Of a DNA stretch of 64,000 bases, positions 7,625 to 60,285 are shown piece after piece; the first letter of the stretch is position 1, and each line of letters opens with the position of its first letter. This DNA is from Takakia lepidozioides (Eukaryota; Plantae; Bryophyta): assembly GCA_030704615.1 (NCBI GenBank), contig CM060733.1, positions 7,998,001-8,062,000 of the forward strand, read 5' to 3'. The translations under genes and the position numbers were made by a program. The notes beneath the pieces are model-generated. The model saw nothing but the letters and a program-made list of their open reading frames with translations, was not told where the DNA came from and made no database searches.

Positions 7625-9328
7625 TCAGGCAGATAAAACTCCCTGCTCGAGCATCAAAGTGTAATTGGTGGTGTTGGAAGTTGGGCCGAAGAACTGGATG
7701 GGACCTGGACTCAAGTAGCTATCCTCATAAGCCCACTGCTCCCGCACTGACGCAAATTTCTTGAAGGGGGAACCATTCAGCTCCACCATGGCCTTCTTAA
7801 TCACAGGCTTGTTCTTGCCCTTCCGACGCTCGACGTCCATGAGCTCTGTGAGAGCTGTCCCTCCAACGGTCCAGTCTTTTGATGGCGCGGTCAAATTGCC
7901 CACCGATGCAATGAGCCCCGTCTGGCCGGTGTGGGCAAGAGCCCCTGCAACAAATCCAAGGGCATAGCAGTAGGTAGCATCAAAGTTGGTGGGCATGCCA
8001 CATCGGCCTTCATACCCAAAGAAATGGGATTGCCCCTTGAAGTTGCCTGTGTACGTCCCCTCGTGTTTCCTTGCTATGAGTTCCGTCTCTATCATAGATA
8101 TCAACATTTTCTCTGTTTCAATTCTAGCTACCTGCACATTGCCGTGGGGGTCGCGTTCCAACAAGAGTTCTTCTTGAATGCTATGTGGCAGCGAGTCAAA
8201 GAGGGCCCTGCAGGGGGGCGCGAGCTTCTCCTTCCAGTGACCCTGGTCATCACATACACCACTTGCCAGAATCTCGTTCAGCTCTGCAATCAGATGTTGG
8301 ATCTCGGGAATGAAATCTATAAGGCCCTCTGGTATAAGGATGATCCCGTACTGCTTCCCATTCTCAGCCCTCTTGCACACCAAGTCTGATATACTATTTG
8401 TCACTTGCCGTAAAGTCATATGAAGCGCGTTCACCTCCTCTCCTATGATTGCAATATTTGGGTGAGTCTGGAGAGCACACTCAAGGGTAATATGAGAAGC
8501 AGCTCGCCCCATCAGACGAACAAAATGGTAGTATTTGCCGGTTGAGCGCGCATCCACCATGATGTTCCCGATCATCTCCGAGTAGATTTTGCAGGCTGTG
8601 TCAAACCCGAAACTTATTGGCACATGCTTGCTTTTGAGGTCGCCATCGATGGTCTTCGGGCACCCGAGCACGCGTGTCTTCAAATTTCTGGCCCGGAAAT
8701 ACTCAGCAAGGAGGGCAGCATTGGTATTGGAGTCATCTCCACCGATCACCACCAAGCCATCTAAGTCCAGCTTAACCACCGTCTCCTCTGCTTGCTTGAA
8801 CTGTTCAGGGGTCTCAATCTTATCGCGGCCGCTGCAAATGATGTCAAATCCTCCCTGGTTACGATAGGGAAAGATAAAGTCAGCCGTGATTTCTACCACA
8901 TTATTGCGCATGATGCCAGCCGGTCCCCCTTTGAATCCATACAAAATGCTGTCGCTTGCGTGCTCTTGCAAGTAGTCAAAGATGCCAGCAATCACATTGT
9001 GACCTCCGGGTGCCTGCCCTCCAGACAAAACCACTCCTAGTTTCAGCTTCTTGTCGGCATTGTATGTGGTTCCTTCGCTGGCGATGAGCTCCACTGAAGG
9101 TTGCCCATACAGATTCGGAAACAGCTTCTCGATTTCCTCTGGGTTCCCGGCGGCCGTCGTAGGAGGGCCATGGACGAGCTTAAACTTGCCATTGAATACT
9201 GTGGGAAGGGGAGGCTTGTGCTCCAATCGATCCGCCTGCACTGGGCTGTAGGCTGAAGTGTCACGCAGCGCCCGTTTTTCTGCCTCTTGGCTCCCTACCG
9301 TCTCTGTCCCATTGGCCGTCATACCCAT
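7625..9328 (-). CDS. PFP-BETA: Pyrophosphate--fructose-6-phosphate 1-phosphotransferase beta subunit, intronless CDS
   Basis: Uninterrupted 567-aa ORF with GVVLSGGQAPGGHNV, YRNQGGFD, GGDDSNTNA, CPKTIDGDL, RLMGRAASHITLE, GYEGRCG and SPGPIQF. Confidence 0.96.
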   Translation of the reverse strand: MGMTANGTETVGSQEAEKRALRDTSAYSPVQADRLEHKPPLPTVFNGKFKLVHGPPTTAAGNPEEIEKLFPNLYGQPSVELIASEGTTYNADKKLKLGVVLSGGQAPGGHNVIAGIFDYLQEHASDSILYGFKGGPAGIMRNNVVEITADFIFPYRNQGGFDIICSGRDKIETPEQFKQAEETVVKLDLDGLVVIGGDDSNTNAALLAEYFRARNLKTRVLGCPKTIDGDLKSKHVPISFGFDTACKIYSEMIGNIMVDARSTGKYYHFVRLMGRAASHITLECALQTHPNIAIIGEEVNALHMTLRQVTNSISDLVCKRAENGKQYGIILIPEGLIDFIPEIQHLIAELNEILASGVCDDQGHWKEKLAPPCRALFDSLPHSIQEELLLERDPHGNVQVARIETEKMLISMIETELIARKHEGTYTGNFKGQSHFFGYEGRCGMPTNFDATYCYALGFVAGALAHTGQTGLIASVGNLTAPSKDWTVGGTALTELMDVERRKGKNKPVIKKAMVELNGSPFKKFASVREQWAYEDSYLSPGPIQFFGPTSNTTNYTLMLEQGVLSA

Positions 9329-21556: not shown

Positions 21557-22291
21557 TGTCGCGCACCTCACTTCGGTAAGCTCCCCTTCAAGTCATAGTT
21601 ACTCGCTTTGATGCGCGCGCCTAACTCCCAACCTGGCCACCGGGCCAACTCGGAGCCTCGGCTGCTCACCGAGACATAACGGTCCTCTTTTTTCCCCCCA
21701 GCAGACCCTCCACCAATTTGGCCCTAGTGGAAATTCCCTTTAGTTGATGGCAGTCCGGAATAGCTCCCCACTCCTTGGTCGTTTTCCGGCTCGCTCGCTT
21801 ACTCACTAGTTTTTGGTCACCAACGGGCTTGCACCGTTCTCGGGGCTACTACTCCCTATATATACTTATGTGACTGTCCGCGGGGGTTTCACAAACAACC
21901 ATGTCATTTTATGGCGAACCACCACGAAGACCCTCGATTCCCAGTGATGAGTCGCGGTGAGTTACGGCCCCATTGGACCGTGATGAGTCCCAAGACTCCC
22001 CATGACTCCCACCACAAGGTCTCCGCCCCCCATGGTGAGTCCTATGTCACCCCCACTAAGTCCCACTAAGTCCCACTAAGTCCCACTAAGCTACCGCCAC
22101 CCCTCGTGGAGCCACCCCCACCGCAACCCCGTGTGCGGGGCTCCACCTAGTGAGTGCCTCCGCCTCCTTGAGTGCTTTGGGCACTCAAGGATGCTTCAGC
22201 CCCCGCATCTATTGTTGCCACTGCCCCCACCATATGGACAACCCCTCTTGTGTCCTGACCCCCCCTGCCCTCAAAGCAAAGAGCCGCGACA
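21557..22291 (-). repeat. 3' LTR of the gypsy element (735 bp)
   Basis: Begins tgtcgcgc and ends ccgcgaca. By-eye identity to 31833-33787 is roughly 93-95% once the CACTA insert is removed. Confidence 0.93.
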
Positions 22292-23539
22292 CACACCCCT
22301 ACCAACAGGGAGTCGATGTCCTCATCGACTTGTCCATTTTGCAGAAACGAACATCCAAGTTGTGGCGTCCCACATCAAGGAGTTTGTTCCCGTACCATGG
22401 CATCCCATAGCAAAGAACCAAACCCCCACTTGACTCTGCTCTCCACTAGCTAGTTCGGACGACTTCCTCCAAGTCTCGGCCAAGGGTGGAGCCTCTCAAG
22501 CTCCACCTAGTGCACTCTTCTTGGCCCACTTCAGGGCCAAGGAACGATCCTCCCCGAGGATCAAATCGCCTTACTGTAACAACATTTGCTTGCGACTGCT
22601 CGTGATGCCGCTTTTGGCACCACATTGACACTAGAAGCATTCATGTCTTTTCCGAATCGACTGCATGTCCAAAACCACTGAGGGAATAACTTTGAAATGT
22701 TTGTTACTACTGCACAGTTGTAACGGATAAATTCACATTTCTAATGGCGGATAGAAGTTGCATCAATGACTCCGCAGTCGGCACAATATTCGCGGCGATT
22801 TAATTCAATTACGTAATTTTTTATTTTTTTTAAAAACAGCAATTACAAGTGGTTTTAAGCACTAGAGAACGACTCTTAACAACTAGGCATTCATTGCACA
22901 CCCTATTCAAAAATGGAATTTTTATAAGTGCTCCACATGGCTCATGACGTGGAATATTTTAATGTATTTTAGGGCTTGTGTGGCTCGTAGAGATTGTTCT
23001 AATCGTCGGATGTAAAATGATCTAAGGGTGGAAGAGTAACTTTGTCCTTTGCCTGAATTTGTCTAAGTGTTGGGAGAGGGATGGAGGCTTGAGAGAGAGA
23101 CGAACAAGTGATGCGAGAAGGACGAAGACCAAATCGAGGCTCATGTCCTGTTGTTGCAAGCGTTTATGGCGTCAAGGGCGCATTATGTGCAAATGTGGGC
23201 TCCCCTTTGTACCATGATTTGGTATTCTTCCTGATGATCACAAGGTTCTTGGGGGAATCAGCTTGGTCTTAGTAACCCATATTTTAATCTCTGCCCGCTC
23301 AGCTGCACCGTGGTGGTTCTTACGAACCAATCCCACATTACCTGACTAGAGATACAAACAACACGCACAAGAGGTCTTCTTGGGTTCATGGTCAGTCTAA
23401 TCCGCAATGGGTCATGACACAAGGTAGAGGACAATGTGGTGAGGGCACCTTCTTCTTCGAGCTATTTCAGCCTGTTTTGCCGAGATGTACTGTCGTGAAG
23501 TGCGATGCTTGCAGGGTATGCACAGTAGGGACGTGGGAT

Positions 23540-26500
23540 GGAGGCTTTGGAGACCTATGAAGTTGCGAAGGGAGAGTTTGATAACATGGCTGAACAAGAT
23601 GTTGTCTCAAGGAACACGCTGAATCTCGCAAGATATGGCCAGCATGTGTGCGGGATGAGGGTATTGGAGACATATGAGCAAATGTTGAGAAGAGGTGCAG
23701 CCTGACCGGGTCACGTTCATTTGTGTTTGCAATGTATGTGCAAACCTGGCAGCCCTGGAGACTTGGTAAAGGGCAAAGAGGTCCATCGTGACATTGTCAA
23801 AGCTGGAACTGTACCAGATGTAACAATACCTCGTCGACATGTATGCCAAACGTGGGAGCATTCCCTTGTGGACAAGGAGTGTTTAACAATATGGCTGAGC
23901 GAAATGTGGTGTGGTGGAACGTGATGATCGCAGGACATGCACAACATGGGCGGGGATTGCGGGTTTTGGAGACCTATGAGCAAATGATGTGGGTCTAGGG
24001 GGTGAAGCCCGAGCACATTACGTTTGTTTGTGTTTGTAGTGCATGTGCGAGCCTGTTGGAGAAGGGCAAAGAGGTCCATGGTTGCATCGTCAAAGCTGGA
24101 ATTGTGGTAGATGTCATTCTGAACATGAATACCCTTCTAGATAGGGAGTGTTCAACAATATGGCTGAGCGAAATGTGGTGTCGTGGAAAGTGATGATCGC
24201 AGGACATGCACAACAGGGGCGGGGATTGTAGGTTTTGGAGACCTATGAGCAGTTGATGTGGGAGGGGGTGAAGTCCGACCACATTACGTTCAGAGAGTTC
24301 AAATGCCTCTCCACCATGACCTTGCTTAGCTAACCATGCCTTGCTGATGTTGTTGTCTTGCACTTGAGCTGTTTTTGGACACTGGCTGGAACATCCACAA
24401 GGCGGCTCTGCTCGAGAGAGAAATCAGCTTGAATGCAGGGGCAGATTTTGAGATCACAATCGCCACTCAAAACGTTGTTCTTTGCACCGGCATGGCATGT
24501 CAGCATGCATATCAACCCAAACTCATTACTCCGTGAGCCTTCCACTGCCGGAGTGTGCCCATTCAAGCCAGATCTTCGAAACGCAGGGATGGAACGGGGT
24601 TTTGAAACCAGCATTGCCTAACTGGATACCCAATTCCGCTCCGCATCTTGGTCCATTAATCTGCTGCACATTGTGAAGTTTTCTGCCCGTTCACCGCAAG
24701 TTGAAGAAGGAGTATTCTTAAAACAGGGTACTCATAATCTGAAAATGGCTCCAGCTTATGTTGCTTGAGTGCGAATATGAATGTGGTTGGCTTGGCAGCT
24801 TTACATCTGGTCCATCCCACTCGATATAATGAGCAGGTTCAGCTTGACTTCTCTCACACAAAAGACGCTGCCAAGATGGGGTTTGCTGCCCTAGATGACT
24901 TCCCGTCGTTGTTCTGGGCTGCAACATACAATTAATCTGGCCCATGGCGAGGGGCCTTGTCTTCCACCAATCATCTGTACCAATCACCAGTCCTGTGAAA
25001 CTATTTTTGTGGCAGTTTGTAAGCAGTGGGCAGCGATGGTGGGCTGTTGTAGGATTTGATGAACTCAATGTCGTGTACTGACAACAACCCCTCATCTCTT
25101 ATGCAAGCATTCAACAAGCCAAGTTGACTGCAGAGCATATTCAGCCCCCCACGTTTCTAGTTGCCTAATGTTCTTCATCTCCTGGGCAGAGCATTTTCCA
25201 GGGTCTCCATCTGTGATGACACACTATCTTCTCATGTGGTTCAGCTTCTGGTCTTGCTCTTGTTTGCACCACCCCAATGAAGGGCAGTTCCCACCTGCTT
25301 GATTCTCTCTATATGGTTGTCTTGGGTCTTGGCAGGGTTTCCCACAACCGCCTTTCCTTTTCAGACTGCCAGTCATCAGCCTCGTTCTCCAATGCTTCAC
25401 TTTCTTCCCAAGTGAAGTGCTCTCCTCTTTTATGCTTCAACGTCCCTGCAGGTGTCTTTTCCTTCATCTCCCGTGGTGCTTTCAATGAATGAGCACTGAT
25501 TTACATCTGTTGGCAACACTTACGGTGTCCCTTTCCTTGCATGCCACTGCAGGCCCGCATTGACTTTCTTGGCAAGGAAGTCTCCTCCTTCTCCCTCATT
25601 TTCTGGCTCTGTTGGTGCCCCACTCACCATGCTATCAGGGCTGCACTTATTTTGTGGTGTTGCGCCAGCCAAGGGCGATCTTTCACTGGTCCGATTGTTG
25701 GCAACAGCTAATTGGAGTCTTCTTGGCAGAGTCTCCCACGAGCTCCCATCAATTTCAGGCATCAGGTTTTCTACCCTGCCCTTCCACTTTTCATAAGCGA
25801 GGTGCCTGTCTTCCTCCCTTTCACTCTTCAGCGTCTCAGGCAGATTTTTCTTCATGCGATTGCTGCTCCCATACTTCCAGTCCTTGTTTAATTTTCTCCA
25901 GCCATCACCCTCAGATTTGACAAGGTATTGCTGCCCTTCCTTGTGTCTTTCCTCACTCCCAGCTGCTGGTTTTATCCCAGATTCACCTCTCATCCTTGCC
26001 TGGGGTTTTGCTTGCCAAACAGCCCTTGTGTGGGGAACTTCAACGAAAGGCAACATCTCATTCTCAGCTCCTGTCTTTGTACCTCTTTGCAGCAGTCCAG
26101 CCTCGGGTGCCTCACTTTCTGATTGTTGGGTTGCATTCTTCGCCGCCAACCTTTGACAAGAAAGTGTGCTCCATCTTCCTCATCTCCTACTGGTTCCCTT
26201 GATGCTTCACCTCGTATGTCTTCCTCCTCATGTTTAGCAGCAGCTCCCATGCTTGAATTGCTACTTTTCCTCGTAGTTGATCTTGTGTTTTCCTTTTTCT
26301 CCGTAGCCTAATCAACAGTTTTGTCTTGGCAGCTCCCTTGCCATGAGTGCCTTGTCTCACTGCATCTCCCTTGGCTGCCCACCATCCGTGGAGTCTTTCT
26401 TGCACTATTCTGACCCTCGTTGGCATGCACTTTGCTGCGATGCCCTACATGTATTTGCTGCTCCCTTTAATCATCAACATAGTGCTCCAGAGCCAGTTCC

Positions 26501-27127
26501 TCATTGTTGACTAGTTGACCTTCTCAGCCCTTGGACCCCATTTTCCCTTCTCCCATGTTGCCTCGTTTTTCTGCTTCATCATTTGCTTTACTTGCACGAT
26601 GTTGCTTCTTCCCTACAGCTCATCATGTGTTGTGGCTCTTTCCCATGTTGCACTCACTCCCATCATACGTTGTGCAGTTGATAAGACTGAGATGAGTTGA
26701 TGCAGGATAGGGGGAGGGCTTGCTGGTGTATGTTGTCCGATAGGCCCCATGCACAGAGTCAAAGCTGGAAGTCAGCCTTGCAAGGACCCAAGTGAGAGAA
26801 GTCTGGTGGGGGTAGCATCTTGGGGGATGGCAGTTAGGGCAATGTGTGTCTAGGGCAATATATGTCATAGCAGCGGGTGATGTGCTGCCAATTTTGAGGA
26901 TAGAGACAGCCTGTAAGCTGTAGATTTGTATAAGTGGTTTCTTCTGACACATATTGCTCCCAGTTTGCCACAACCAGTTGTTTGCGTTTGTAGTGCATGT
27001 GCGAGCCTGCTGGGGAAGGGCAAAGAGGTCCATGGTTGCATCGTCAAAGCTGGAATTGTGGCAGATGTCATTCTGAACAATACCCTTGTGGACAGGGAGT
27101 GTTCAACAATATGGCTGAGCGAAGGAT
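23540..27127 (+). pseudogene. Degenerate PLS-class pentatricopeptide-repeat (PPR) gene fragments inside the CACTA (23540-24290 and 26978-27127)
   Basis: Repeated, frameshifted motifs: VKPEHITFVCVCSACASL, KGKEVHGCIVKAG, NNTLVD, VFNNMAERNVV.W.VMIAGHAQ.G. Confidence 0.85.
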
Positions 27128-27134
27128 AGAGTGT

Positions 27135-28210
27135 AATGACTGCTAATGAAGGTACCTTCTTCAATTTCACCTTGTTTTCCCCTCTTATCAGAATCGCCCG
27201 AATTCTGCAAGTTAGCTGGTTGAGTGAAGCTTTGATAGTTTGGAGTGACTTTGACATGATTCTGCCAATGTGACAACAGGAAAGTATCAGAAACAGTAAC
27301 ACAGACGAGGAGAAGTTGTGGAATGAATATTTTTCTGACCCCAGTCAATGGTGGGACAATCGAGGCAAGAAGGTGAATGTTTGTTGGATTATAGAGAGTA
27401 GCAGATGCAATTGAGTATAGGAACTAGTGTGATAAGTTGAGTTGGGTGCTTCCTAGAACAAGTCTAGGCTGTCATCGTCAACTGCTAGCAACAAGGCAAG
27501 GTTGTATGCATGATTCGTGCGAGGCATGGATAGTTGAAGGAGCAAGGATAGAGTGTGGGTGCAGATTCACCCAAGAGGGCCAGACTTCAAGCTCCAGATT
27601 AAATATGAAGCTACAAGAAACCTGCATGGGTAGATGGTCAACTGGCAGCAACGGAACAATTGATAAAATCAGACATTGTTAATGAAGGCATCTTCTTCAG
27701 CACATTTCACCCTGTTTTTCCCTCTTATTAGAATCGGCCAAAATTTCCATGTTGAATTATGCAAGTTAACTGGTTGAGTGAATCTAGTTTGGAGTGACTT
27801 TGACATGATACTGCTATGTGACAACAGGAAAGTATCAAAAAACAAGTAACAGACATGAGGAGAAGCTGTGGAATGAATACTTTTCTGCCCCCAGTCAATG
27901 ATGGGACAACTGAGGCAAAAAGGTGAATGCCTGCTACATTTCAGAGAGTAGCAGACGCAATTGAGCATAGGAACTAGTGTGATAAGCTGAGTTGGGTGTT
28001 TCCTAGAACAAATGTAGGTTGTCATTGTCAGCTACTAGCAGCAAGGCAAGGATGAATGCATGATTTGTGCAGGGGCATGGATAGCTGAAGGAGCAGGGAT
28101 AGAGTGTGGTCCAGATTCATCCTAGAGGGCCAAATTTCAAGCACAAGATTTACCTATGATTCCCTGTGGATCAATAACTACAAGAAACCTCCATGGGTAG
28201 ATGGTCTATT
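27135..28210 (+). pseudogene. Two tandem copies (about 545 bp each) of a spliced OSB-type PDF-motif coding module
   Basis: Copy 1: DEEKLWNEYFSDPSQWWDNRGKK (27304-27372), GT..AG intron, then IHPRGPDFK. Copy 2 has nonsense changes (SQ*WDN*GKK), then IHPRGPNFKHK...SLWINNYKKPPWV. This fits the W..FF..P..WWDNR..K..P..PDFKHK....LW motif of organellar ssDNA-binding (OSB) proteins. Confidence 0.8.
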
Positions 28211-29659
28211 CCGTGGAACTCGCTTAAGTTGCATTATGAGGATCAGAACTGCTTGACTTGCACGAGGCCTTGACCCTTAGGCAATCCCCAGAGCAGCAGT
28301 AGCTTTTGGGCTGCTTTTTTACTTTGTGTTTTTTATTTTGTCCCATAAGCTCTTTGAGCTTTCCGCAGATGTAATAAAGTAACATTTTGTTTCATTTCAT
28401 TCATTTTCATTTCATTTTGTTTCATGGCATGTCTTTCATCGTTTGTGCATTTCTAATGCATGATTAGTTCTCTTGTATGGCATTACTAGTCGACTCACTA
28501 CAAACACCAAAACTCCAAAGCATGAATCACTATGAATGATTGTTCAAGTAATTTTGAGCATTTCATGTAAAGTAGTAAAGCAGTGGTTGCGCCAACTTCC
28601 GCAGTCGCAATTTCCACTGGGCATGTAGCACTGCAAGTTATGTGGTCTACTACCACGTGGCAGCAGTGGTGCTCGTCGTGGCGCCGCCACGTCGGCATCC
28701 ACATCGTCGTCCACGTCCGCGTCCATGTGTCACCGCGCTTCAGTGAGTCAGTCCACTCATCCGGAGGGAAAAGTCAAAGTCAGCCCAAAAGGTCAGACAC
28801 ACGGGCGGCCCGCCTGGTTACGCCACATGGTTCTTCAGCATTAATCGCATTAATCGCTGAGCAGTTGTTCGTGCGTCTGCGTCCTTTACCACTCCAATCA
28901 TTGGATGTCCAACCCAACTACCACGTCTGTTGTAACTTCCAGTAGATCCCAGTTTTTTGACTTTTACGACTCAAAATGAGTCGTTACCCCAGTGGTAAAT
29001 GACACGAATGCTTCTAGTGTGAGCAAGGGTTCGCCTTGAACCCTTTTTGACTAGGAAGATAACCTTGAACCAACCGTGCGCCCCAATCACTACAATTGGG
29101 CCCGCTTTGGAATGTTGGCCTGAGGTATGGGAACACGCCAAAGCCGCATTACGACTTCGTTCCGAGGCTACACAATTATAGTACGTGAACAGAAGCGCGT
29201 AGCTTCCGTGTTAGCCCACACTACAAGGCAACCCCCTCAATAGCGCAGTTATAGTACGCGCACGCGTCAGGTGCGCACTAGCACATGAACTCCCAAAGAA
29301 GGCGCAAGTTTCTTTGCCCCTTGGATGGGAGTCACCCGATTTCGGCACTACACAAACACATGATTAATCCAATTTACCTCTCCCACTTTTGTAAGCTAGC
29401 ATGCATTCTACACACTAGCCAAACATACCATGCATCACCATTTCAACCACAATAGGCAGCACAACATTTGAAAACCATTTCATTTATAACAAAATTTGTA
29501 CAACACAAGTTTTTGCAATCGGATTCCTGGGCTAGCTAAGCCTGGCTAAGCATGCATTTCCTCCCCCACGCTCCAAGGTTGATGACCCCATCAACGCTTC
29601 TTCCGCTTTTGAGGTCGCCCTTCGAAAGCTGCAACCGCGTTTTCCATTCTCGAGGCACG

Positions 29660-30600
29660 CAGAAGTCCGTGATGCAGGACTTGAGGATGGGGGTTAAATC
29701 GCAGTTCCACTTGCAAAATGGACTGCTCCGGTATAAGCAAAAACGTCTCTACGTGCCAAAGGGAGGGATCAGAGATAGCCTCTTGAGAGAATGCCATGAT
29801 AGCCCGCTTGTGGGCCACGGCGGAGCCAAGCGCACTGCGGCACTCTTGAAGAAAGAGTATTTCTGGCCCAAAATGAGGGAGGAGGCAGAGGAGTATGTCA
29901 AGACATGCACCACATGCCAACAAAACCGGAGCGAGTACAAAAAGCAAGCGGGGCTGTTACAACCCTTGCCGATTCCAGAGGGGACTTGGGAAAGCGTCTC
30001 GATGGATTTCATGACTGCTATGCCGCTGTCAAAAGGATTCGATGCAATCATGGTGGTGGTGGATAGGTTCAGTAAAATGGGCCATTTCATCCCCACCAAG
30101 AAGACAGGAAAGGCGCAGGAGACAGGGCGACTTTATTTCGCCCACGTCTTAAAGCATCATGGAGTCCCGAAGGATATTGTCTCGGACCGCGATCCAAAGT
30201 TTACGAGTAAATTTTGGAGGGCACTTTGGAAGAAGATGGGGACGAGGCTGAAGATGAGCACCGCCTTCCGACCTATGACCGACAGCCAAACAGAAAGAGT
30301 GAATTCCGTAGTGAAGCATATCTTGCGGAATTACGTGTCGGCAGACCAAACAGACTGGGTGGAACACTTAGACGCGGCAGAGTTCTGTTATAATAACACA
30401 GAACACTCCGCAACGAGAGTTTCCCCTTTCGTATTGGTCTATGGAAAAGCACATCTGGTGCCGACAAGTTGGGCCGCCTAGGACGTTGAGGAACCGGCAG
30501 TAGCAGCGGTACTGGAAGAACGCGAGCGTTTGTTGAAGCTCGCAAAGTACAACATTGCCAAAGCTAGGAAACGGTATGAAAGGCAGGCGAATCGAACTCA
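29660..30600 (+). pseudogene. Gypsy integrase segment (H2C2 zinc finger plus catalytic core), inverted relative to its element
   Basis: ECHDSPLVGHGG...YVKTCTTCQ, WESVSMDF, VVVDRFSKMGHFIP, IVSDRDPKFTS, TDSQTERVN. In-frame TAG at 30479-30481, then AKARKRYERQAN. Confidence 0.93.
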
Positions 30601-31777
30601 CAAGAGTAGTTGCCTCCCTTGCAAGTCTTGGCGACCACCGCCTCCACCAAACGACTGATGGAAGCTTCGGACAACTTCGTGGTTACCCGAGTCATGTTCA
30701 ATTGTCGGGGATTCGTACACTTCTTGGTCATGTGCCCGGGCTCCCCACAATAGAAGCACACTCCATCGAAGGTCGCCTTTTGTCCGCCATAAGGCGTCGC
30801 ACCTGATTTTCCTTTCGAAGCACCGGGTGTCGTCTTGGCGTGTGAAGGTCCTCCCTTCGATTTCCACGTGCCATTGTCGCCACGTGGCCTATCCCACTTC
30901 TTTTCCGGTCGAAAGGAGTCACCCTCCCGCCGGGTCTTCTTGTGGTTCATCTCCGTACGGCCTTGTCTTTCGCCCCTAGGGACATCCGAAAAACATTCAG
31001 CCCTCTCAATTGCCTCGTTCAAAGTCTTAGGTGGCTTCTCCTCCAACTTCCGTCTGGCCCATGGGACCAGTCCCGCCACAAAGTTGAAGACCATTTCTGG
31101 TTTTGCCATGTCCGCGACGTCGAGCAACAGCACATTGAAAGCCTGAACATATCCCCGAATGTCATCCGTTTGCTTCAGATTCCTCATCTTGTCCCGGACG
31201 AGCCAGGACCGTTGAGGGGCACAAACTGTCTCTTCATCAGTTCCTTGAACGCACTCCAGTTCAAGGTTTCCGGGTTTGGACCTCGGTCGTTAAGGCGTTT
31301 CTGCCACCATTGTTGAGCATAGCCCCTCAAATAGGTGGGAGCCACTTCCACCCGATCCTCATCACTCAATTTGGCCGCCCGGAAGTATTGCTCTAGCTCC
31401 AAGAGCCAGGTGTTGAGTGCCTTCCGATTTCGGACGCCCTCGAAGGTGCCGGGTTCCTTAGGCTTCACCTTAAACTTTGCCTTGGTGGAAGTGGCATTAG
31501 CCGCCTTCAACACATCTTTCAACGTCCCGCCAAACTGCGCCAACAACCCTTCCCAAAAGGCTGCTGGCATTGGAGGCATTTGTTGGTCTGTCGGAGCTCT
31601 CAAGGATTCCTCGGGCTTCGACTCCTCAGATTCTTCCCGTTCTTGAGAGGCCTCGTTTTCAAAAGCATGCATCGCTTCCTCAAATGGTCGCTTCGGTGAC
31701 ACATCGCCCCCATCGGGCTCACCAGGATCATCATCTTTCGGGTCGTTCCGCTTTCGCTTTGGCTTGCCCGACCCCAT
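30600..31777 (-). pseudogene. Retrotransposon gag with a CCHC zinc knuckle, frameshifted near 31185
   Basis: KPKEPGTFEG, YLRGYAQQWW, LKQTDDIRGYV..F and CFYCGEPGHMTKKC. It starts just downstream of the PBS. Confidence 0.92.
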
Positions 31778-31832
31778 GATGAGGCCGATCCCAAGGACGA
31801 TCGCGTACTAAACTCTAAGCTCTGATACCAAG

Positions 31833-33787
31833 TGTCGCGCATCTCACTTCGGTAAGCTCCCCTTCAAGTCATAGTTACTAGCTTTGATGCGCGCGCCTAA
31901 CTCCCAACCTGGCCACCGGGCCAACTCAGAGCTTCGGCTGCTCACCGGGACATAACGGTCCCCCTTTCCCCCCCCCAACAGACCCTCCACCAATTTGGGC
32001 CTAGTGGAAATTCCCTTTGGTAGATGGCAGTCCGGAATAACTCCCCATTCCTTGGTCACTTTCCGGCTAGCTCGCTTACTCACTAGTTTTTGGTCACCAA
32101 CGGGCTTGCACCATTCTCGGGGTTACTACTCCCTATATATACTTCTGTGACTGTCCGCGGGGGTTTCACAAACAACCATGCCATTTTATGGCGAATCACC
32201 ACGAAGACCCTCGATTCCCGGTGATAAGTCGCGGTGAGTCTTGGCCCACCCACCACGGCCCCATTGGACCGTGATGAGTCCCAAGACTCCCCACGACTCC
32301 CACCACAAGGTCTCCGCCCCCATGGTGAGTCCTATGTCACCCCCACTAAGTTCCACTAAGCTACCGCCACCCCTCGTGGAGCCATCCCCACCGCAACCCG
32401 GTGTCACTACAGGAAAAGGGGGGGATTTGCGACGCCGTGGCCACGCCGCGGCGTCGTAAAACAGCCTTTTTTCGGGCAGGGGGAAAAACCCAAATTTGCG
32501 ACGCCCGAGCGTCGCACGCCCGTCGCCAAAAGAACGTCGCAAATTTGCGACCAATGGGGGTCGCAAATAAGTGAACCGCGATTTGCGACGCCGACGCGTT
32601 TTGCGACGCCCGGGCGTCGAAAAAGAAAAAGAAAACGAAAAAGAAAAAAACCTACTCTGCAATGCAGAATTAGCACCGTCCGGGGGTCGCAAAGTGCGAC
32701 GCCCAGACGTCACAATTGAAGGGGGTACATTTGAATTTAGGCGGGAAAATTTGAATTTGAAATTTAAATTTCAAAAACTTGTTGACCATTGACTCCGGTT
32801 CTCTCTAATGGCGATATGTTCATTGTTCTACATACATCATGCAATGCAATGCATACTTGAACCTAAGACCTCCACGTTATAACATTTCTAATACACTACA
32901 AACTAACCAACATACCTATGCTACATCTATGTATCACAAAAGCAATCTAAATATATATATACACATATAAAGATTTCCTTCAAGAGCCTTTAAGTTCCTT
33001 CTAAGGGGGTCTCTCTTGTGATGCCGGGTTGTTGCAACCTCCACAGCCTTAGTGCCCAGCCCCAGCCCTAGCCCCAGCACCGTCGCCGTTGTTGTACCCC
33101 CCCCACCGCCAGGCGCCCCAAGCGACGTCCTTGTGATGACCTAAGCTGACCACAACACCATTGCGACCCCCCGTGGCGACGCCATTGCGACCCCCTGGCG
33201 TCGCAACATTGGGCGTCCTAGCGCGAGGCGCCCCCAGCGACGTTTTTGTGAAGTTGAGGGCCGCAAAGTCAAAAAAAAAAAAAAAAACTCCCATTATGGT
33301 GATGCTGTTGCGACGCCCTGGCGTCGCAGAGGCGCTGGGGCACCCTTAGTGACGGCGAGGCGTCGCAACGTCCCACAAAAATAAAAAATAAAAAATAAAA
33401 AATTCCGACGTCGGGGCGTCGCAAGAAAAAAAAAAACCCGTCAAATCGAGGGCCCTCTTTCCCCCTTCATACCACCTTACGATGGCTGGGCGTCGTAATG
33501 GTGTCGCAGCGGGGGATTGCGACGCCGGGGCACGCAAACAAACGTCGCGGGCTCGGCGTCGCAGGCTCAGCGCCGCGCAGGGCGTGGGGCGCGGCTGGCA
33601 TCGCAAACCCCCCCATTTGCTGTAGTGTGTGCGGGGCTCCACCTAGTGAGCGTCTCCGCCTCCTTGAGTGCTTTGGGCACTCAAGGATGCTTCAGCCCCC
33701 GCATCTATTGTTGTCACTGCCCCCACCACAGGGGCAGCCCCTCTTGTGTCCCGACCCCCCCTGCCCTCAAAGCAAAGGGCCGCGACA
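31833..33787 (-). repeat. 5' LTR of the gypsy element, interrupted by a CACTA insert
   Basis: Matches 21557-22291 on both sides of 32405-33627 and lies next to the PBS. Confidence 0.93.
32405..33627. mobile_element. Non-autonomous CACTA element, 1223 bp
   Basis: Imperfect TIRs of about 31 bp: CACTACAGGAAAAGGGGGGGATTTGCGACGCC versus CACTACAGCAAATGGGGGGGTTTGCGATGCC. TSD TGT at 32402-32404 and 33628-33630. Many TTGCGACGCC/GGCGTCGCA subterminal repeats. The empty site is visible in the other LTR at about 22130. Confidence 0.96.
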
Positions 33788-36265: not shown

Positions 36266-38271
36266 TCAGTTACCATTACAGTACATCAAATCAAAATGAT
36301 TCAACAAAAAATGCCTCACTAATTCATTGTAAAACTCTGCACCACTATACATACTGAAACTGAAAATGTTATGAATCTGTATTTTCTCTCTCTTACCCAT
36401 GTTGACAAGGGAGAAATGTAGAAACACAGCAACACGTACATTGTATCTTTGGTTAAGAGTTTTAGAGATAAGAAAGTTAAGGCTATCATGTGGGAAAGTA
36501 GTTTGTGTGCAAAGAAGTGTACTGTTTGATTTAGTGTGAGTTCTACTCAGCTTGGTCCCTAGGAACTTGGAGGTTGGTGTAGAAGCTTGTATTAGTTCAA
36601 TTGTCATTTAAGTACATCTGCCCATTTGCAGACAGTTCACATAAGTTCAATTGTCACTTAAGGAGGGCTGTCTGCAGCATGCTTGAATTTGAATAGTGAG
36701 GTGCAACATATGATTGTTGTAGGAATTTCAGAGACTACTTGTGATAAATAACAGTTACATTCTTTAAACTTATACATTTGAATTTGATATCATGCTAGGA
36801 ATGGTATCGGATTGTCTTACAAGTTGGGTTCCAATTTCTTGTCAATCAGAACAGCCTGATTGGCATCTCCATCATGGGCCATACCAAATGTGAGGTATGT
36901 TAAGTTCATCATTTTCGTGAGCGATGTGCTTGCTAATTTTTTGCATGCATGATAGGCCAAAGCCTCTCTCATCCTCTCTCATTGATGATGGGATCTAGGG
37001 CAACTAGTTTACACAACATTTAAATGAGTAGTACCTCTCTGTCTATCCTTCTTTTTCTAAACAAGACCCTGAACCACACTACCGGCCTCGAGGGGATGTC
37101 ACATGCAAATTTAAATTTTATTGGCAACGGACTCTCAACAAGGGTAGGCTCATGAAAGCAATTAGCAGACAAAAATACCAGGAACTGAAAGCATATAAAA
37201 GGTGGAGGGAAGGATATCTGAGTCGTACACAATTTCCATGGGACATGTTGCAAAGTCGAGAAACTCATCCAGCTTTGGTGTTTTCTCTGCCTGCAAGACT
37301 GCTTGAGATTGGGACATATCACACAATCAAATGATGACTGTTCTTATGTGCCTCAGAAATGAAAATCCACCATCCGAAGACAACAACAGAGAGAGAAAGA
37401 CACTATCTTATATGAGATTTTAACCTACAACACACGCATGAGGATAAGAACTTGAGTACTCCAGTTTGACATAAAAGCAGCCTGAACATGCTATGATGCT
37501 CCCTGACACCAAACGATAGGGAAGTGAATTTAGTAGTTGACATCCACATCCTACTATAGGTTCCACATACCTACCATTGGGAACATTTGGCGAGACATAA
37601 TGGAGGGAGGTGTTTAATGACTGTGCATCCAGATCATTAAGGATTTTTTTTCTTCCGGATGGCCGGCTCAATGATCCCCTTGCTTCTCTCTTCTGGATGG
37701 CCTTTGTGTCTAAAGCTTGTCGGACTTTAATTAATTAACACAACTTGAATTGGTTGTGCTTTATGTTGGCATTTAGATTGACACCTACCAGAGCACCACA
37801 CCTCGATAGCAGAGCACACACCTAACACATTTGTTATTCTTTCTTATGCACAAGCTTGATGAATTAACAGGTCCCAACTCCCAACTTCAAAAACTCTGAC
37901 TCTCTTGTGTCTCTCTAGTTGTGGGCCGTGGCTCTCCTTGCTTTGGTAGGATGAGGACGGGGTGGTGAAAGGGGCCAGTATTAGTACGGGCATATATCTC
38001 TGCCGGATCATAAGGTAGTAGATCTTCGGCTGTTGCCCGCAATGATTCCAATGCCAACACCCGTTCGTCCTGCTCAAGACAAACTATCTCATTATGAGTG
38101 TTATCTGACGAAGAATGTGGCTCCTGAGTCCTACTATGCCAATGTCACTCTTGAAAATATTTGTTTGAATTCTTCTTTATGTGCAACAAGGGAGACATAG
38201 GGTGGATGCAGAAGAAGGGATGGATAGGGTTGTAGTGTGATATAACATGTTGATTATCCAACAAATCTTAC

Positions 38272-40467
38272 CTTGTCCATGTCAGTGAGCTGTCTTCCCC
38301 ACTTCAGCATGTTCAGATTCATGTTAGATACCTGCCAAGGCATCATTGTAAATTGAATCACAACAAGATCGCCCTTCCATAAAAAGAGGGATCAATTCTC
38401 AGGATCTTGAGCTTGCACATATGGAAGCTCAACAATCATCTCCACCTGAACAATGAGCAAGTTTGTTCATTATGTGGGCTCTCTTTTCTTTATATAGAAG
38501 TGACTTGATTTCAAGAGAGAGAAAATCTCACCGCATTCAAGACGTTGAAATCCTCCATGGTGTACTCATATGGACCAAAATTTTCAGATTTCACAAATAC
38601 AGTCATCCATTGGGGGAATGCTCGTAATGCTACCTGCATCAATTCTTCATCATCGCTGACTGGATCTGCGCTAAAGAATGAGCAAGGTTTCTATTTTCTT
38701 CATTAGTTTGGCAGTTTATCAAACAATCAATATTGATTTCTGTTAATAGCTAGTGGCCGTAATAAGATTGCAGCCTTGCTAGAAAACAAGGGAGTGAGCA
38801 GCACTTAAAACTAATTGCAACTGAGCTTCCAGGAAGAAGAGAGAGGGTTGGTAGGATACTTATTCAGTCCATGTAAGGACACAGACTGCTTCTAGCATGG
38901 GCGATTGTGATTCAGCAGTCATGCGTAGTGTCTGGAGCATCGTCAGAAGCACTGGTGTCTCTGCCTACATTCATGCATTCATTTTTTAATCAGCATATGA
39001 TACCCATATTTAGCTAATTAACCTCACAAAATTGCATGTGTATTGGTAGATTTGAAAGGGAAGGTAAACTGAGGTACTCTTTTGGGAGTTTCACTTGTCA
39101 CAAGACACATGTTCACAATGCAAGGTATTCATGCAAGCATTCTACACTTGCTTAACATGAAGATTGTTTGAACTTGAGATATGATCCAACGCCATTTGCA
39201 CGGATTGATAGAGAACATAAAACATCAAGTTGGTTCCTTAGCTAGAGATTAAACTGAAGCTGGAACAATCGTTGATAGCAACTGGGGAGAATTGATCTCT
39301 CAGCAAATAGGTACACAAGAGTATACCTCAAGGAAATGGAGAACACATGTGGGGTAGACCATTAGAAAACCTGTCATCCTGTTGAACTGGCCTGCAGCTT
39401 TGAGTGTCTCTTCATGCCAGGCTGCATGCTAGCTAGCACAGATCCACACTGAATCATGCTTTGGTAGGATCTCAAATAAATCAATGTTGGATGTCGATTA
39501 ATTCATGTTGCTTATGCTGGGGCCATAGACCACGACTTGGTTTGCATGGAGAAGAGAAGTTTATTTTTACTCTTTCATATTGATTCTTGTCTATTATTGT
39601 GAACGTCCCTTACTTTTTCCCTTACTACATTGCGAAAACTCACCACCTCCTCTGCGGCGCACCAAAAAAAAAAAAAAACCAACAACAACTCGCCTCCAAA
39701 TGTGTGCATCTTGGTTTATGAGACTTAAGAACCAAAAACAGAAAACTAGAGAGGAAAAATGTTATGTAAGTACACGCAAGGCGCTGCTTGGTGGTCTCTT
39801 TGGCGTTGATTTTTCCGGCATACAACATGCGGCTTATACTTGGTCCTCTCTGCACATGTTAAGAAACTTTGTGCTTCTCAGATGACCCCTTATTAGAACT
39901 ATTACTCTAAATTGAATGACTTTGAGTAATCCACACGTCTACACAACGCATTACCTAGTCGTCTTTGAAGCCACTTTAATGTCAAGGTGGAGATTGTGGG
40001 GAAGGTTTTTCAAAGGTGTCATATTTCTTGTAATCTACAGCCCCATTCATATCTAATCAACAATATTTGTGGTCTTATTTTCTCTGTGAGTTATAGGTCC
40101 TCAAATCTCCCAATGAGTATTGCATCAGTGTAGGCTCCAGCCATAGACTCGTGCACCAACCAAAGTTAAACTTGACATTTTTAGGGTAAACCAGGTTATG
40201 GCAGAACATCTATATGCAGATGTTGGATCATACAGAAGTCACTCTCTCCTGTAGATAATTGCAATCATCAACAAAATGATGCAAGCTTCCTTTTCCTCCA
40301 ACACGTTCCTTCTATGAGGCAGAAGGGGTGGTGGATTGTGTCAAATGTAGTCTTAATTTGGAATATGGGAAATCAGACATGACCTTGGCAGATGCTGAAA
40401 CATTTTCTATCACTAGATCCAACATGTTTTGCCGCGGTTGGTGTATGTTCATTATATAGTCGTCCAT
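38272..40467 (-). pseudogene. TEX47/MOT7/DYBLUP-like (dynein-associated BLUF-like) gene; six exons, one in-frame stop, 3' end not found
   Basis: Exons 40384-40467, 39774-39849, 39327-39421, 38860-38964, 38532-38633 and 38272-38331 join with consistent phase at GT-AG sites. Product: MDDYIMNIHQPRQNMLDLVIENVSASAK-RGPSISRMLYAGKINAKETTKQRLAS-WHEETLKAAGQFNRMTGFLMVYPTCVLHFLE-AETPVLLTMLQTLRMTAESQSPMLEAVCVLTWTE*-VALRAFPQWMTVFVKSENFGPYEYTMEDFNVLNA-VSNMNLNMLKWGRQLTDMDK. Confidence 0.75.
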
Positions 40468-41012
40468 GGCTGCTGCCTTTCAGAATTCTCACAAGAGAGG
40501 TCTTCACAAATACCCGCAAGAAAGAGAGACGGATGGCGAGAGGCTTAACTTCTCAGTACCCTTGGAAATTCCGCTCAGAGTTATTTATTTATTTATTTAT
40601 GGCTCAGATTTGCAATTAACCGCTTATAAAGATTGAAATATAGATTTAATAAAACTTCTTTCCATTTTCTTAATTTTACAAAAACATTATTTCGCATTAA
40701 TTTTTTTTTTCTGTTTTATTTTTAAAAACAGGGATGGCTAGAATATCATTTGAATTGTTGAAAACTGATCACATATGATGATGTGAAAATCGCCATGTAT
40801 AAAGAACTTGATTTACGTATGAAAACTATGTGTAATACAAAACCTTTCTTTGTACCACAACAATGGGAAAAATACTATAGTAAGGGCTACAAAATGAAAA
40901 TTGTAATATAAAAGTTTTTTCACATCACAAGCTTCTTATCTTAAAGAGAAGACAACAACAAAGATGATGCACTAAATACTATTTACAAAAATACCAAGTG
41001 TTCAGGAGGTTT

Positions 41013-42400: not shown

Positions 42401-43049
42401 TAAAAGCAACTGCTACCACAACAAAGACCAGAGGGTGAAAGATGCAAAGAGAGAGAGGGGACGGGAACAAGCTTATACTCACAAATGAAGCTATGACCTT
42501 AAGCTAATTTATTTGCAAGAATGAGACCGCCCCATGTGTGCCTCAACTGCACTGCTCCACAGGTTACTTAGTGCGTCGCCTACTTTACGATGAGGTCATG
42601 GAGAAAGACGACAATATGTTGTAGAAGATGAGAGTAAAAATGAAGAAGATGAACTCGAAAATGAATGCAAAACCCTAAACAATCCTGAAGAATCTCAGGG
42701 CAATGTGAAAATTGTAGTTTATTCCAAAGAGTAGGGTGTGGTAGTTTTGAACCCACAACCTCTTAGAATACAAAGTCTTAAGAGTACTCATGATAACCAC
42801 TAGAGTAACCAGGGCTTCTTTTGGTTATATTATGGTTTTTTTTTTCCTAAACTCCTAGACTCATGAAGGTTTATTTAAAAATAGATGTCGGTGCATTACA
42901 AATAGTTGTACGAACATTTATCGAGAACAAAATTTTGTTTTGATTGTAATAAATGGTGACAACTACAAATTTTGTCGGTACATACCAATAAATAGTACAT
43001 GTGATTTATAAATGTAATGACCAAAGTTGATACATTTATTATAGTAGTT

Positions 43050-43745
43050 TATTTTTTTCCATTTCCTTTAGGACTCCTTAGGGCCGTTCTAAGGAGTCCT
43101 AAGGGCGACTATAAATAACAATGTCCATTTTTCCATTTTCCCCCTCATAGAACTCCTTAGGGCCACCCTCAGGAGTCCTAATGATAATTATAAATAATAA
43201 TTTATATCTTTCCATTTTCTCTCTCTTAGGATTCCTTAGGGCAACCTTAAGGAGTCCTAAGGGCGACTATATATCGCAATTTACATCTTTCCATTTCCCC
43301 CCCTCTTAGGGCCGCCCTGAGGAGTCCTAAGGGCAATTATAAATAATAATATATATGTTTCCATCTTCCCCCTTTTAGGATTTCTTAGGGCCGCCCTAAG
43401 GAGTCCTAAGGGCGATTATAAATAATAATTTACATCTTTCCATTTTCCCCCTCTTAGGACTTCTTAGGGCGGTCCTAAGGAGTCCTAAAGACGAATAATA
43501 ATTTATATCTTTCCAGTTTTCCCCCTCTTAAGACTCCTTAGGGACGCCCTAAGGAGTCCGAAGGGCAATTATAAATAATCATTTACATGTTTCCATTTTT
43601 CCCCTCTTAGGACTTTTTAAAGCCACCCTAAGGAGTCCGAAGGGCAATTATAAATAATAATTTATATGTTTCCATTTCCCCTCTTAGGACTTTTTAGGGC
43701 CCTAAGGAGTCCTAAGCGTGATTATAAGTAATAATTTATATCTTT
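43050..43745. repeat. Tandem array of about 9 units of about 78 bp, each with a roughly 35-bp palindrome
   Basis: The core TTAGGACTCCTTAGGG-CCG-CCCTAAGGAGTCCTAA is followed by a conserved AT-rich gggcgattataaataataatttacatctttccattttcccc segment. Confidence 0.92.
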
Positions 43746-44612
43746 AGATTTTTTTTTTCTAGTCCTAAACTTGCTGACACGTGTCTTTTCATCCCAAAAA
43801 ATGAAAAAACTGTCATTTTCAGTTCATTTTTCGAAATTTTTGCCTTTTTTAATATTTTTTTTGACCTCCTCCTCCACTTTCATCTGTTCTTAATGTCAAA
43901 AAGTTTACAAATGAATGAACCTTTCCATCCAAGTTCCTGGCTTTTTCAAAAATATATATTCTACGTGGCATGAAAAGTTTGAACCCTGTTACTGATAGAT
44001 ATTCCAACCTTCTCACCACCAAGCTACACTTGTTATATTGATGGTAGGTCAAACTACAATGTTGTAGATAGATATAGTTGCTCCTACATTAAAAGTGTAT
44101 GCTCTAGTCTATAATTATCCGTCGTTATCTTTTGACGCCTGTCCTCTGTCATCTGTTCTCAATGTGAAAAAGCTTACAAATGATTCAAATGGAATTTATA
44201 TTAATCTTCCTTAAAGTTAATAATATATGTATTAACTAGGGACGGGGGATCCAAACCCTCACCACCTGGTGAAGGTATATCTAGAGGCTTATCCATTCAG
44301 CCTACCACCATTATTCACACCCTATACCCGCTCAAAAGGAGTCCCCACAATGCCTCTATCCCAAGTAAATTGGGACAGAGCCAATAAAAAAGGATGGCAA
44401 AGTACTGAAAATGCACTGTGTTGAGTCCCCTCCGGATCACTAGAAAGGAGGTATACCCAAATTTTGTCCAAAACATCTAGAAGATTAGGAGAAGCCGCCC
44501 AACATCATAAGACATATAGTTGTAGAAATTGGACTCAATTGGATCAGCCATTTAGGAATTTCGATATATCAGTGTGATTTTGTTTTCCAATTTTGCAAAG
44601 ATTGCAAAATCA

Positions 44613-58100: not shown

Positions 58101-60285
58101 GGCGGTCTCTCTGACAGCCGTTCCCTGCCGGCAACGTCAGTGTCCGTCAGTTGCTCTCCTGACGTACGGTCACTTCACAACGAACGCAACTGTTCATCCA
58201 AATAAGTAATAGTATTTATGGCAATCAAAAGAAGTCAAACCGTAGAATCTATCCCTTGTCAACGTACAATCATCTTTCTTACTTTACCCTGTCAGACGCA
58301 TGTTTACTACTAATTAACTCACTAACCAAATCACTAATCTACTTACTAATCTGCTCACTAATCCGATGGCTTGCGAGCACCCTGATTTGTGGAGAGCGGT
58401 GGCGGCGCTCCGTTTTTGTTTTTAGGGTATATATAGTTACCCACCGGATATTTTAGGGTATATATATCTACGCAGAAGGATATTTTCACCGGCTGCCCGT
58501 GCACCTACGTACAAGGGCGCCAGCTGCTTGGTTTTATCGTGACTCTGCACCCAACGAGAACATCCCACGTGGCCACTCATGACTAGTCTTGCGCTTTACG
58601 GTCGTAGAGTCACTTCTAAGTTCCGGAAATAGGAAGGAGTGGTTAGTGAAGTACATATTGAGTGGGTTTTTTGTAGTGTCGGGATTCGAACCCAAGCCCA
58701 GCTGGGTGCTTGTAACGGGCCCGAAATCCAACAATGTATAACAGTTAATTCGGGCGTGATTGGAGCTCAACAGTCGAGGCGATCTGGCGACATATGCCAA
58801 ATAGCCATTACTTACTACCTGAATTTGACCCCAGGATCTCAGCACTTATTGAGTCCCCTCATTTATGACGATTAGTTATCCATATTTTTTATTTACTAAC
58901 ATTAGATATCACTTACGGTCGTGATAAGACAAGTATTGCGACACCCCGGCAAAAATTTTAATGTATTCATAATCCACGTAGTTTTCGACTAATAATAATT
59001 TTGATTATTTAGAATAAAGTTAGTGTACGAGAAACTGTAAGAAGTCAGCGAGGACGACTATGTTCATCCATTTTGCTTGCGACCTTCATCTAATCAACTG
59101 CAGGGTTTGGTCTTCCTGGCTGCGGTTAGTTAATGCGTGGTAAGACTAAGTCACTAATCCGTCGCGTAATGCAAGCGCAGGTGCCCAGAAAGAAAATAGA
59201 GGATTGGAGGCCTGCCCGGAAGGGCTGCCCTCCACACGTGCGGATGCTCCCCATGCGCTGCTGTTGGGCTTCTCGCTCGGCACTCTCGTCTGTCTGTCTG
59301 TTGTCTCTCTCCCCCGCTCGTCCCCCGCGTCGCTGCTTCTTTCCTTCCTCGGATCAAGTCTGTTGGCACATGTTGAGCTGCACCCAAGCATTTTCTTCTG
59401 TTTCTTTGCGGGGTTGTATGTCGAAGTTGCGTGTTTCTTGCCTTCGTCGGGGGTCAGGGGACTGGGAGTGTTCGGTTTCTCTCTGTTGTAGGACTTGCCT
59501 GTTTCCTCAGCGCTTTCTCTCCGCGGGTGCTTTTTCAACTGCATTCAGCCTGTCTGTGTGGTGCTTGTAGCGTGGTTGGACTTTTTGTCTTCCTGTCCGT
59601 CTCGCTCGCTCTGGCTGGATGGTCTTCTGTAATGGCGACAGTTTGGTTGAGTCTTGTCGTCTATTACCTGGAGTGGCTTTAGTGTTTTCTATAACCCCCC
59701 AACTCCTCTCGCAGCTTATCGTTATGAGCACGGTCCTGTGGTAGGTTTGGATAATTTTCAAGCTTTGTTACGTTATGGGGATTTCTTCCTCTCTCTCCGA
59801 TGTCCGTTCTGGAAACTCTCCTCTTGACAGGTCACGCCTGCATGCTCATCAGAATTGTAGAAGTGAGGCGTGCAGGAGTTATGCAGGAATCGGTTGGAAA
59901 GGTGAGGCGAGCAGTTGTGCCACTCCCCTGTCCTTTTTCTCTGCTCCTGCCTCGGGCAGTATGTCCTAGGAGTGGAGAAGGCGGGCCAAGCAGGGAGAAA
60001 ACTCACAAAAGAGTAGTGTTTTTTTTGAAGATTTCCGGTTCTTAAGAGAGGTCCACTGATGCAGACCAATAGAGTGGGCGGTAGTATTATCGGCGCCCTG
60101 CATTTCTTTGATACCACTGACCGACATTGCCAAGCTTCATATGTACTTGGCAACGTACTGCCATCACTTGGAAGTTCGGCGCCTTCATGGGCACTCCAAG
60201 GCGCAAAATGCTTGTCATTCGAGACTCTCAAGATACGGAAAGGAATGTGCGTTGGGGGGCCCGATGTCCAGTAGAGTCCCCGAGG

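Follow-up and report, generated by a model that had tools for sequence, protein, structure and literature searches.

In Chlamydomonas, MOT7 occupies the middle of the star-shaped FAP43/FAP44 tether/tetherhead complex by which inner-arm dynein f/I1 is docked (PMC10266980); when MOT7 is lost, the connection to the 1-beta motor disappears and blue-light acclimation changes (PMC7909887). Mammalian TEX47 (C7orf62; chain 9fqr_H0, 252 amino acids) and Ciona DYBLUP belong to the same family, are associated with testis or sperm and carry a BLUF-like N-terminal domain; TEX47 is absent from human airway axonemes (PMC10266980). The paper that defined DYBLUP found clear BLUF-domain orthologues outside animals only in Chlamydomonas, a chytrid and Paramecium (PMC7909887), and our literature search found no report of TEX47, MOT7 or DYBLUP in land plants. 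Here we describe a moss gene of this family, located in a 64,000-nt stretch of Takakia lepidozioides DNA (GenBank contig CM060733.1, positions 7,998,001 to 8,062,000), which we call the window.

The moss protein belongs to the same Pfam family as MOT7 of Chlamydomonas reinhardtii (chain 8glv_D9, 238 amino acids), with which its Sphagnum orthologue aligns over residues 10-138 (E 3e-10). Both share the motifs PR..LLDV, R.(L/V)Y, TGFLLVYP...H..E and R.F..W, a tyrosine in the first strand and a similar size. They differ in that identity is low outside these motifs, that the moss gene is predicted to act only in sperm and that the copy in the window is stopped at codon 120. The mammalian chain, in contrast, has a leucine where moss and alga have the first-strand tyrosine. 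Bacterial BLUF proteins (E. coli BluF, AppA; PF04940) resemble the moss protein in motif layout, with a tyrosine in the first strand, TG...LE in the third and R.F..W near the end. LAX28 of Leishmania is a proposed distant relative needed for assembly of f/I1 and its tether, its sequence relation being too weak for its own authors to claim homology.

A complete nine-exon TEX47/MOT7 gene in the window

The gene lies on the minus strand at 36846-40467 and consists of nine short exons totalling 732 nt, that is, 243 codons and a stop. With a probability of roughly 0.8, we consider it to be the full-length TEX47/MOT7/DYBLUP orthologue of a moss that diverged early, with a recent nonsense codon in the assembled copy. 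The model was built from blastn and tblastx comparisons of a Sphagnum magellanicum locus with the window, and splicing and expression of the gene are predicted from conservation alone. Its features are as follows (P0004 is the annotated protein of the Sphagnum locus).

40384-40467, minus strand: exon 1; ATG at 40467, 28 codons, donor gtcatg; E 8e-9 to P0004 (tblastn)
39774-39849, minus strand: exon 2; 25 codons and 1 base; contains SRMLYAGKI (BLUF-like first strand, tyrosine included); E 2e-9 to P0004
39327-39421, minus strand: exon 3, with revised start; 2 bases and 31 codons; holds TGFLMVYPTCVLHFLE; Pfam TEX47 22.3 bits
38860-38964, minus strand: exon 4; 35 codons, the last of them TAA; next bases gtatcc
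38860-38862, minus strand: premature TAA, codon 120; GAT (Asp), GAA (Glu) or ATG (Met) in relatives, GAA in a second contig of read run X1
38532-38633, minus strand: exon 5; 34 codons, RAFPQW inside; E 1e-15 to P0004
38272-38331, minus strand: exon 6; 20 codons; 90% amino acid identity to Sphagnum
37988-38069, minus strand: exon 7, new; 27 codons and 1 base; donor gtacta; conserved in four lineages
37218-37301, minus strand: exon 8, new; 2 bases, 27 codons and 1 base
36890-37217, minus strand: intron 8, predicted U12-type; 5′ end ATATCCTT (37217-37210), branch-like CTTAAC (36904-36899), 3′ AC (36891-36890)
36846-36889, minus strand: exon 9, new; 2 bases, 13 codons and TGA (36848-36846); LVWPMME inside

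An earlier note on this DNA, made from the sequence alone, had proposed a hidden short-exon gene of this family in a land plant, with six exons spliced in phase. The plant is of the moss lineage. The gene itself was confirmed by the matches of exon 3 and of P0004, and the six exons do show minus-strand AG/GT borders and compatible phases; what had to be corrected was the start of exon 3. Its acceptor boundary lies at 39421, 30 nt upstream of the ∼39391 first assumed. This extension adds WHEETLKAAG, a segment that is conserved in three relatives, lies within annotated Sphagnum proteins and lengthens the match to Pfam TEX47. The four motifs expected along the gene, PRQNMLDLVIE (matching PRxxxLDLVxE), SRMLYAGKI, TGFLMVYPTCVLHFLE and RAFPQW, were all found, in the predicted order. 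The note had found no C-terminal exons. Three are present, exons 7, 8 and 9, and they are conserved. Exons 6-9 are assigned to the gene because they are colinear with the others, their phases match, no stop follows exon 5 in four lineages and the total length fits; the predicted 243 codons compare with 238 residues in MOT7 and 252 in TEX47. Introns 1-7 are of the GT-AG type and intron 8 is AT-AC.

Membership in the TEX47/MOT7/DYBLUP family is well supported by sequence similarity. The window protein was searched exon by exon, so that scores for the full family are those of the orthologue P0004. Exon 3 alone matched a single Pfam family, TEX47 (PF24787), with an E value of 1.9e-4 in the version of the earlier note and of 1.1e-4 (22.3 bits, against a cut-off of 25 bits) in the longer one. 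Searched against 177,635 PDB sequences, the same exon returned two matches only, namely 8glv_D9, the Chlamydomonas ‘inner-arm dynein f/I1 light chain’ (MOT7), and 9fqr_H0, ‘Testis expressed 47’. A full HMMER search with exon 5 yielded five proteins, among them the hypothetical protein P0004 from Sphagnum magellanicum, which has 159 residues and is 77% identical to the window protein over the shared exons. P0004 scored 69.2 bits against Pfam TEX47 (E 4.6e-19), above the 25-bit gathering score, and its PDB matches were TEX47 9fqr_H0 (E 7e-11) and MOT7 8glv_D9, with no other chains; its close neighbours in the ESM Atlas were TEX47 clusters throughout. Conversely, tblastn of P0004 against the window recovered exons 1, 2, 3 and 5 in colinear order at E 8e-9, 2e-9, 9e-15 and 1e-15, far beyond chance. 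An ESM Atlas search with exon 5 gave nothing usable, and an AlphaFold2 model of the Sphagnum orthologue from a five-row alignment was likewise unusable (mean predicted local distance difference test score of 37).

The gene has been conserved in deep moss-type lineages

The Sphagnum magellanicum locus (L001 6001-9123, from CM038911.1) has nine colinear coding islands in common with the window. All nine exon lengths are identical between the two, the phases agree and the introns stand at the same places. Two further relatives were traced from open reading frame (ORF) fragments in the HMMER search with exon 5. The first, an 11-kb Logan contig (L004), contains all nine exons intact together with the same AT-AC intron, and its exon lengths are identical to those of the window apart from 2 codons in exon 1; its phases agree as well, and splice signals are conserved across window, Sphagnum and L004. 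The second, a 1.4-kb metagenome contig of 27% guanine-cytosine content (L003), spans exons 4-7. Public gene models for Sphagnum are truncated: in P0004, exon 5 is followed by a spurious short exon that closes the model, and P0006 (S. jensenii, 184 amino acids) continues into intron 4. Exons 6-9 are thus unannotated in Sphagnum, and the C-terminal half of the protein is missing from its public models.

The nearest named relatives of the window gene are those of Sphagnum, at 77% amino acid identity. Substitutions were counted per exon and then summed. Pairwise synonymous divergence (dS) was 1.4-1.6, and hence saturated, nonsynonymous divergence (dN) was 0.13-0.18, and their ratio (omega) lay between 0.09 and 0.11. 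When dN was split among three points, the shortest branch was that of the window lineage (0.049, versus 0.084 and 0.098). The low omega and the shortness of this branch argue that the gene has been under strong constraint through nearly all of its history in the window lineage. Since identity to Sphagnum is 77% and dS is saturated, the DNA should come from a deep moss-type lineage other than Sphagnum.

A word search with P0004 returned only Sphagnum-type proteins and ORF fragments, a result that does not imply absence from other plants. When short exon peptides were aligned to P0004 with MAFFT, they were placed wrongly. The flanking genes gave no further information: none were shared between the window and the Sphagnum locus, which is uninformative at this divergence, the ORFs flanking the gene in L004 had no Pfam domain, and L004 and the window had no repeats in common.

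Intron 8 is a predicted U12-type AT-AC intron

The last intron begins with the same 5′ signal, ATATCCTT, in three lineages, at 36890-37217 (minus strand) in the window, 8458-9079 in L001 and 6684-7035 in L004. In the window, CTTAAC stands 10 nt before the 3′ end ...cac. The Sphagnum intron combines ATATCCTT with TCCTTGAC at the same spacing and has AA at its 3′ end, and that of L004 has ATATCCTT, TTCTTTGAC and a 3′ end ...cac. Two features of U12-type introns were looked for and found, namely ATATCCTT at the start of the intron and, ∼10-15 nt ahead of its last base, a branch site resembling TCCTTRAC. Intron 8 is therefore predicted to be an AT-AC intron removed by the minor spliceosome and conserved in three deep moss-type lineages; in Sphagnum its last two bases are apparently AA.

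The donor of intron 4, directly after the TAA (window 38852-38859, minus strand), reads GTATCCTA and agrees with the U12 5′ consensus at 7 of 8 positions. The corresponding donors in Sphagnum and L004 are ordinary, and no branch-site match was seen at the right distance; the resemblance is probably a coincidence.

The assembled copy carries one premature stop, and an intact version exists in public reads

The earlier note had read TAA as the last codon of exon 4, and this is what the window has, at 38862-38860 followed by gtatcc. It is the sole disabling change in the reading frame, which is thus not intact at codon 120; there is no frameshift, and all the splice sites are present. Among the relatives, the position is occupied by GAT in Sphagnum, GAA in L004 and ATG in L003. 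A check of public reads located both the stop and a sense codon. Public contigs were compared with 37800-40600, and those of the DNA run X1, which bears the same organism label, show A and C at position 38862 of the plus strand (depth 15.4 and 10.1), equivalent in coding direction to TAA and GAA. Two synonymous changes are also found in the GAA contig, and it has the conserved Gly (...LEGVCVL) of all three relatives where the window has Ala. The two versions diverge by ∼5% within a block at 38862-39116, with collapsed sequence on either side. At more than ten further sites X1 gives only a letter other than that of the window, and therefore does not simply duplicate the assembly. A second run (X5, labelled ‘plant metagenome’) contributed pieces 95-99% alike, with exon 4 outside its coverage. 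The TAA version is accordingly a recent nonsense form of the gene, and public reads contain its intact counterpart. That counterpart might be an allele, a near-identical second copy or the sequence of an admixed relative. We infer that the TAA and GAA versions are allelic, a reading that the collapsed flanks of the divergent block fit.

In the X1 contigs, depth reaches ∼34-49 at window positions 39774-39961, compared with 13-23 elsewhere, and a second contig differs at 39861 and 39863. The genome may hold further copies of part of exon 2 and intron 1.

Several observations weigh against an expressed, full-length orthologue that segregates for a stop. Depth ratios of the two bubbles disagree (10.1:15.4 versus 11.4:7.75) and point to more than two haplotypes, and the pair of contigs at 38862 may represent two loci, or two close relatives in admixture, instead of alleles; contigs also drop rare variants and cannot be phased. 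Nothing of the gene was found among the public contigs of X6 and X7, presumed RNA runs of the same organism. As to the family, exons 4-8 had no significant match in Pfam or PDB, either singly or as exon-wise profiles. Taken singly, exons 1, 2 and 4-8 were without a Pfam match (they are too short to score alone) and exons 4, 5, 7 and 8 without a PDB match, and exon-wise profiles of 3-4 species for exons 5, 7 and 8 matched PDB at chance level only. Homology of the C-terminal half to the algal and animal proteins is thus not shown by single exons 6-9 or by exon-wise profiles.

The same data can be read as a fixed pseudogene at the onset of decay, in a lineage that rarely or never uses swimming sperm, with the GAA contig representing a second locus or an admixed relative. 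Relative to the other versions, the window haplotype does show three derived changes in its coding sequence: Met to Ile at codon 5, the conserved Gly of exon 4 to Ala, and the stop. A ∼5% difference within 38862-39116 is high for alleles, and North American Takakia lepidozioides forms archegonia while no sporophytes are known there (PMC9021317). On the other hand, only one of the changes is disabling, with frame and splice sites otherwise preserved, the dN branch of the window lineage is the shortest of the three, and beyond the divergent block both versions merge into single contigs, the pattern expected of alleles. We therefore regard a fixed pseudogene as unlikely, though far from negligible. 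The ‘decaying gene’ of the earlier note holds in so far as there is one nonsense codon; the absence of frameshifts and lost splice sites, the short dN branch and the GAA version in X1 speak against any wider decay.

A role in light sensing is unproven

The earlier note had called the protein a BLUF-type blue-light module. P0004 matches the Pfam BLUF profile (PF04940) over positions 2-89 of 92, that is, near its full length, at 17.8 bits (E 0.0038), under the 25-bit gathering score. Moss, alga and mammal all have a His (VLHFLE, YIHVIE and ILHILE) in a V/I-L/I-H-x-L/I-E motif. In hhalign, the column of this family His coincided with Gln49 of E. coli BluF (FFQLLEG) in an alignment that was non-significant (E 0.16). 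In BLUF proteins this Gln is the essential photoactive residue. A tyrosine is retained in the first strand (RMLYAGK in moss, RIVYVAR in MOT7), its equivalence to the BLUF Tyr resting on motif order only. The moss protein thus differs from bacterial BLUF proteins by its sub-threshold score and by the His at the Gln column, which makes flavin photochemistry doubtful and leaves its description as a blue-light sensor unproven; we do not assign it to the BLUF family.

An intact protein that binds flavin and makes moss sperm motility responsive to blue light would have a precedent in DYBLUP/MOT7, for which weak flavin binding and, in Chlamydomonas mot7 mutants, abnormal blue-light acclimation have been described (PMC7909887). 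The near full-length profile match and the retained first-strand Tyr would agree with such a role. Against it stand the score below the Pfam cut-off, the His shared by moss, alga and mammal at the Gln column of that non-significant alignment, and a flavin that is not resolvable in the axoneme structure (PMC10266980). Overall, we find a flavin-binding sensor improbable. A more elaborate picture, in which a BLUF-like dynein tether gates the beat of moss sperm by light and has been caught as a segregating null allele at the onset of gene loss in a rarely sexual lineage, would be a shade more speculative again.

Sequencing error, transposon capture and the surroundings of the gene

A TAA produced by assembly or sequencing error, in a plant whose gene is intact, would need a single base change from a sense codon, and the GAA version does occur in reads of the same organism. 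Yet the TAA version is itself present among the X1 contigs, at the higher depth (15.4 of 25.5), and X1, with another letter alone at more than ten sites, is no plain copy of the assembly. As the TAA has been seen twice, in the assembly and in X1, an error is unlikely, and we give this explanation very little weight.

Least credible of all is a transposon-captured or dispersed duplicate of an intact locus elsewhere, as proposed in the earlier note: transposons abound in the window (among them an LTR element, for long terminal repeat, at ∼21557-33787 that holds nested elements) and a second exon 4 version exists somewhere in the read set, but captured genes are usually fragments and this one keeps nine exons, start, stop and eight introns at the ancestral positions and phases seen in Sphagnum, no direct or inverted repeats were found to bracket it, the nearest LTR element ends ∼3 kb away, and the window holds no second copy, tblastn with P0004 matching nothing besides exons 1, 2, 3 and 5. 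Capture by a Pack-type element was rejected on the completeness of the gene, its ancestral introns and the lack of bracketing terminal repeats.

Repeats are present on both sides of the gene. A tandem array of about eight units of ∼79 nt (core CCCTAAGGAGTCCTAAGGGC...) occupies 42998-43760, 2.5 kb upstream of the gene, and its units also pair with one another as inverted repeats. Direct repeats at ∼21557-22291 and 31833-33787 are 92-94% alike and resemble retrotransposon LTRs; 29552-30481 holds an integrase ORF. Other ORFs of the window are listed below; the three long ones carry domains that are ordinary for plants.

7625-9328, minus strand: long uninterrupted ORF, phosphofructokinase, 567 amino acids
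18372-20129, plus strand: long uninterrupted ORF, HGSNAT-like acyltransferase, 585 amino acids
35502-35936, plus strand: ORF of 144 amino acids with a dUTPase domain (E 1.5e-7), ∼0.9 kb past the gene's 3′ end; perhaps a fragment of a dUTPase, carried by a transposon or cellular
60127-62640, plus strand: long uninterrupted ORF, receptor kinase of CRINKLY4-like layout, 837 amino acids, with RCC1_2 repeats, a kinase domain and a Cys-rich TNFR-like region

Proposed function, effect of the stop and significance

By homology, the moss protein would be a small BLUF-like tether component that does the same structural job as MOT7, only in sperm flagella. It would belong to the FAP43/FAP44 complex. In Chlamydomonas, this complex anchors dynein f/I1, a two-headed dynein of the inner arm, on the doublet microtubule and modulates its activity. 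By analogy with the alga, it is likely that the moss protein works like MOT7, and we infer from this its axonemal location and function.

In our best reading, the stop arose by one recent G-to-T change that turned GAA into TAA at codon 120, three bases ahead of the junction of exons 4 and 5. The product would end at residue 119, inside the BLUF-like domain, and lose the RAFPQW strand and 123 C-terminal residues; with five exon junctions downstream of the TAA, the mRNA would be a target of nonsense-mediated decay. No GT donor that bypasses the TAA was found among the alternative sites. Skipping of exon 4 would keep the frame at the cost of 35 residues of the domain core and is unlikely to give a working protein. 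Because the product would be truncated within the domain and nonsense-mediated decay is expected, the TAA haplotype is very probably null. Relaxed selection is a fair hypothesis for the sperm genes of this moss. However, Chlamydomonas mot7 mutants keep both positive and negative phototaxis (PMC7909887); loss of the gene thus seems to have mild effects, and drift of a nonsense allele is conceivable in sexual populations as well.

At least three deep moss-type lineages possess the complete gene in strongly conserved form, and public annotation truncates or misses it. It provides a defined candidate regulator of inner-arm dynein f/I1 in plant sperm, which are reported to lack outer dynein arms. 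With a stop standing beside an intact version, the locus offers a usable natural knock-out and one data point on whether genes for sperm are degenerating in this moss.

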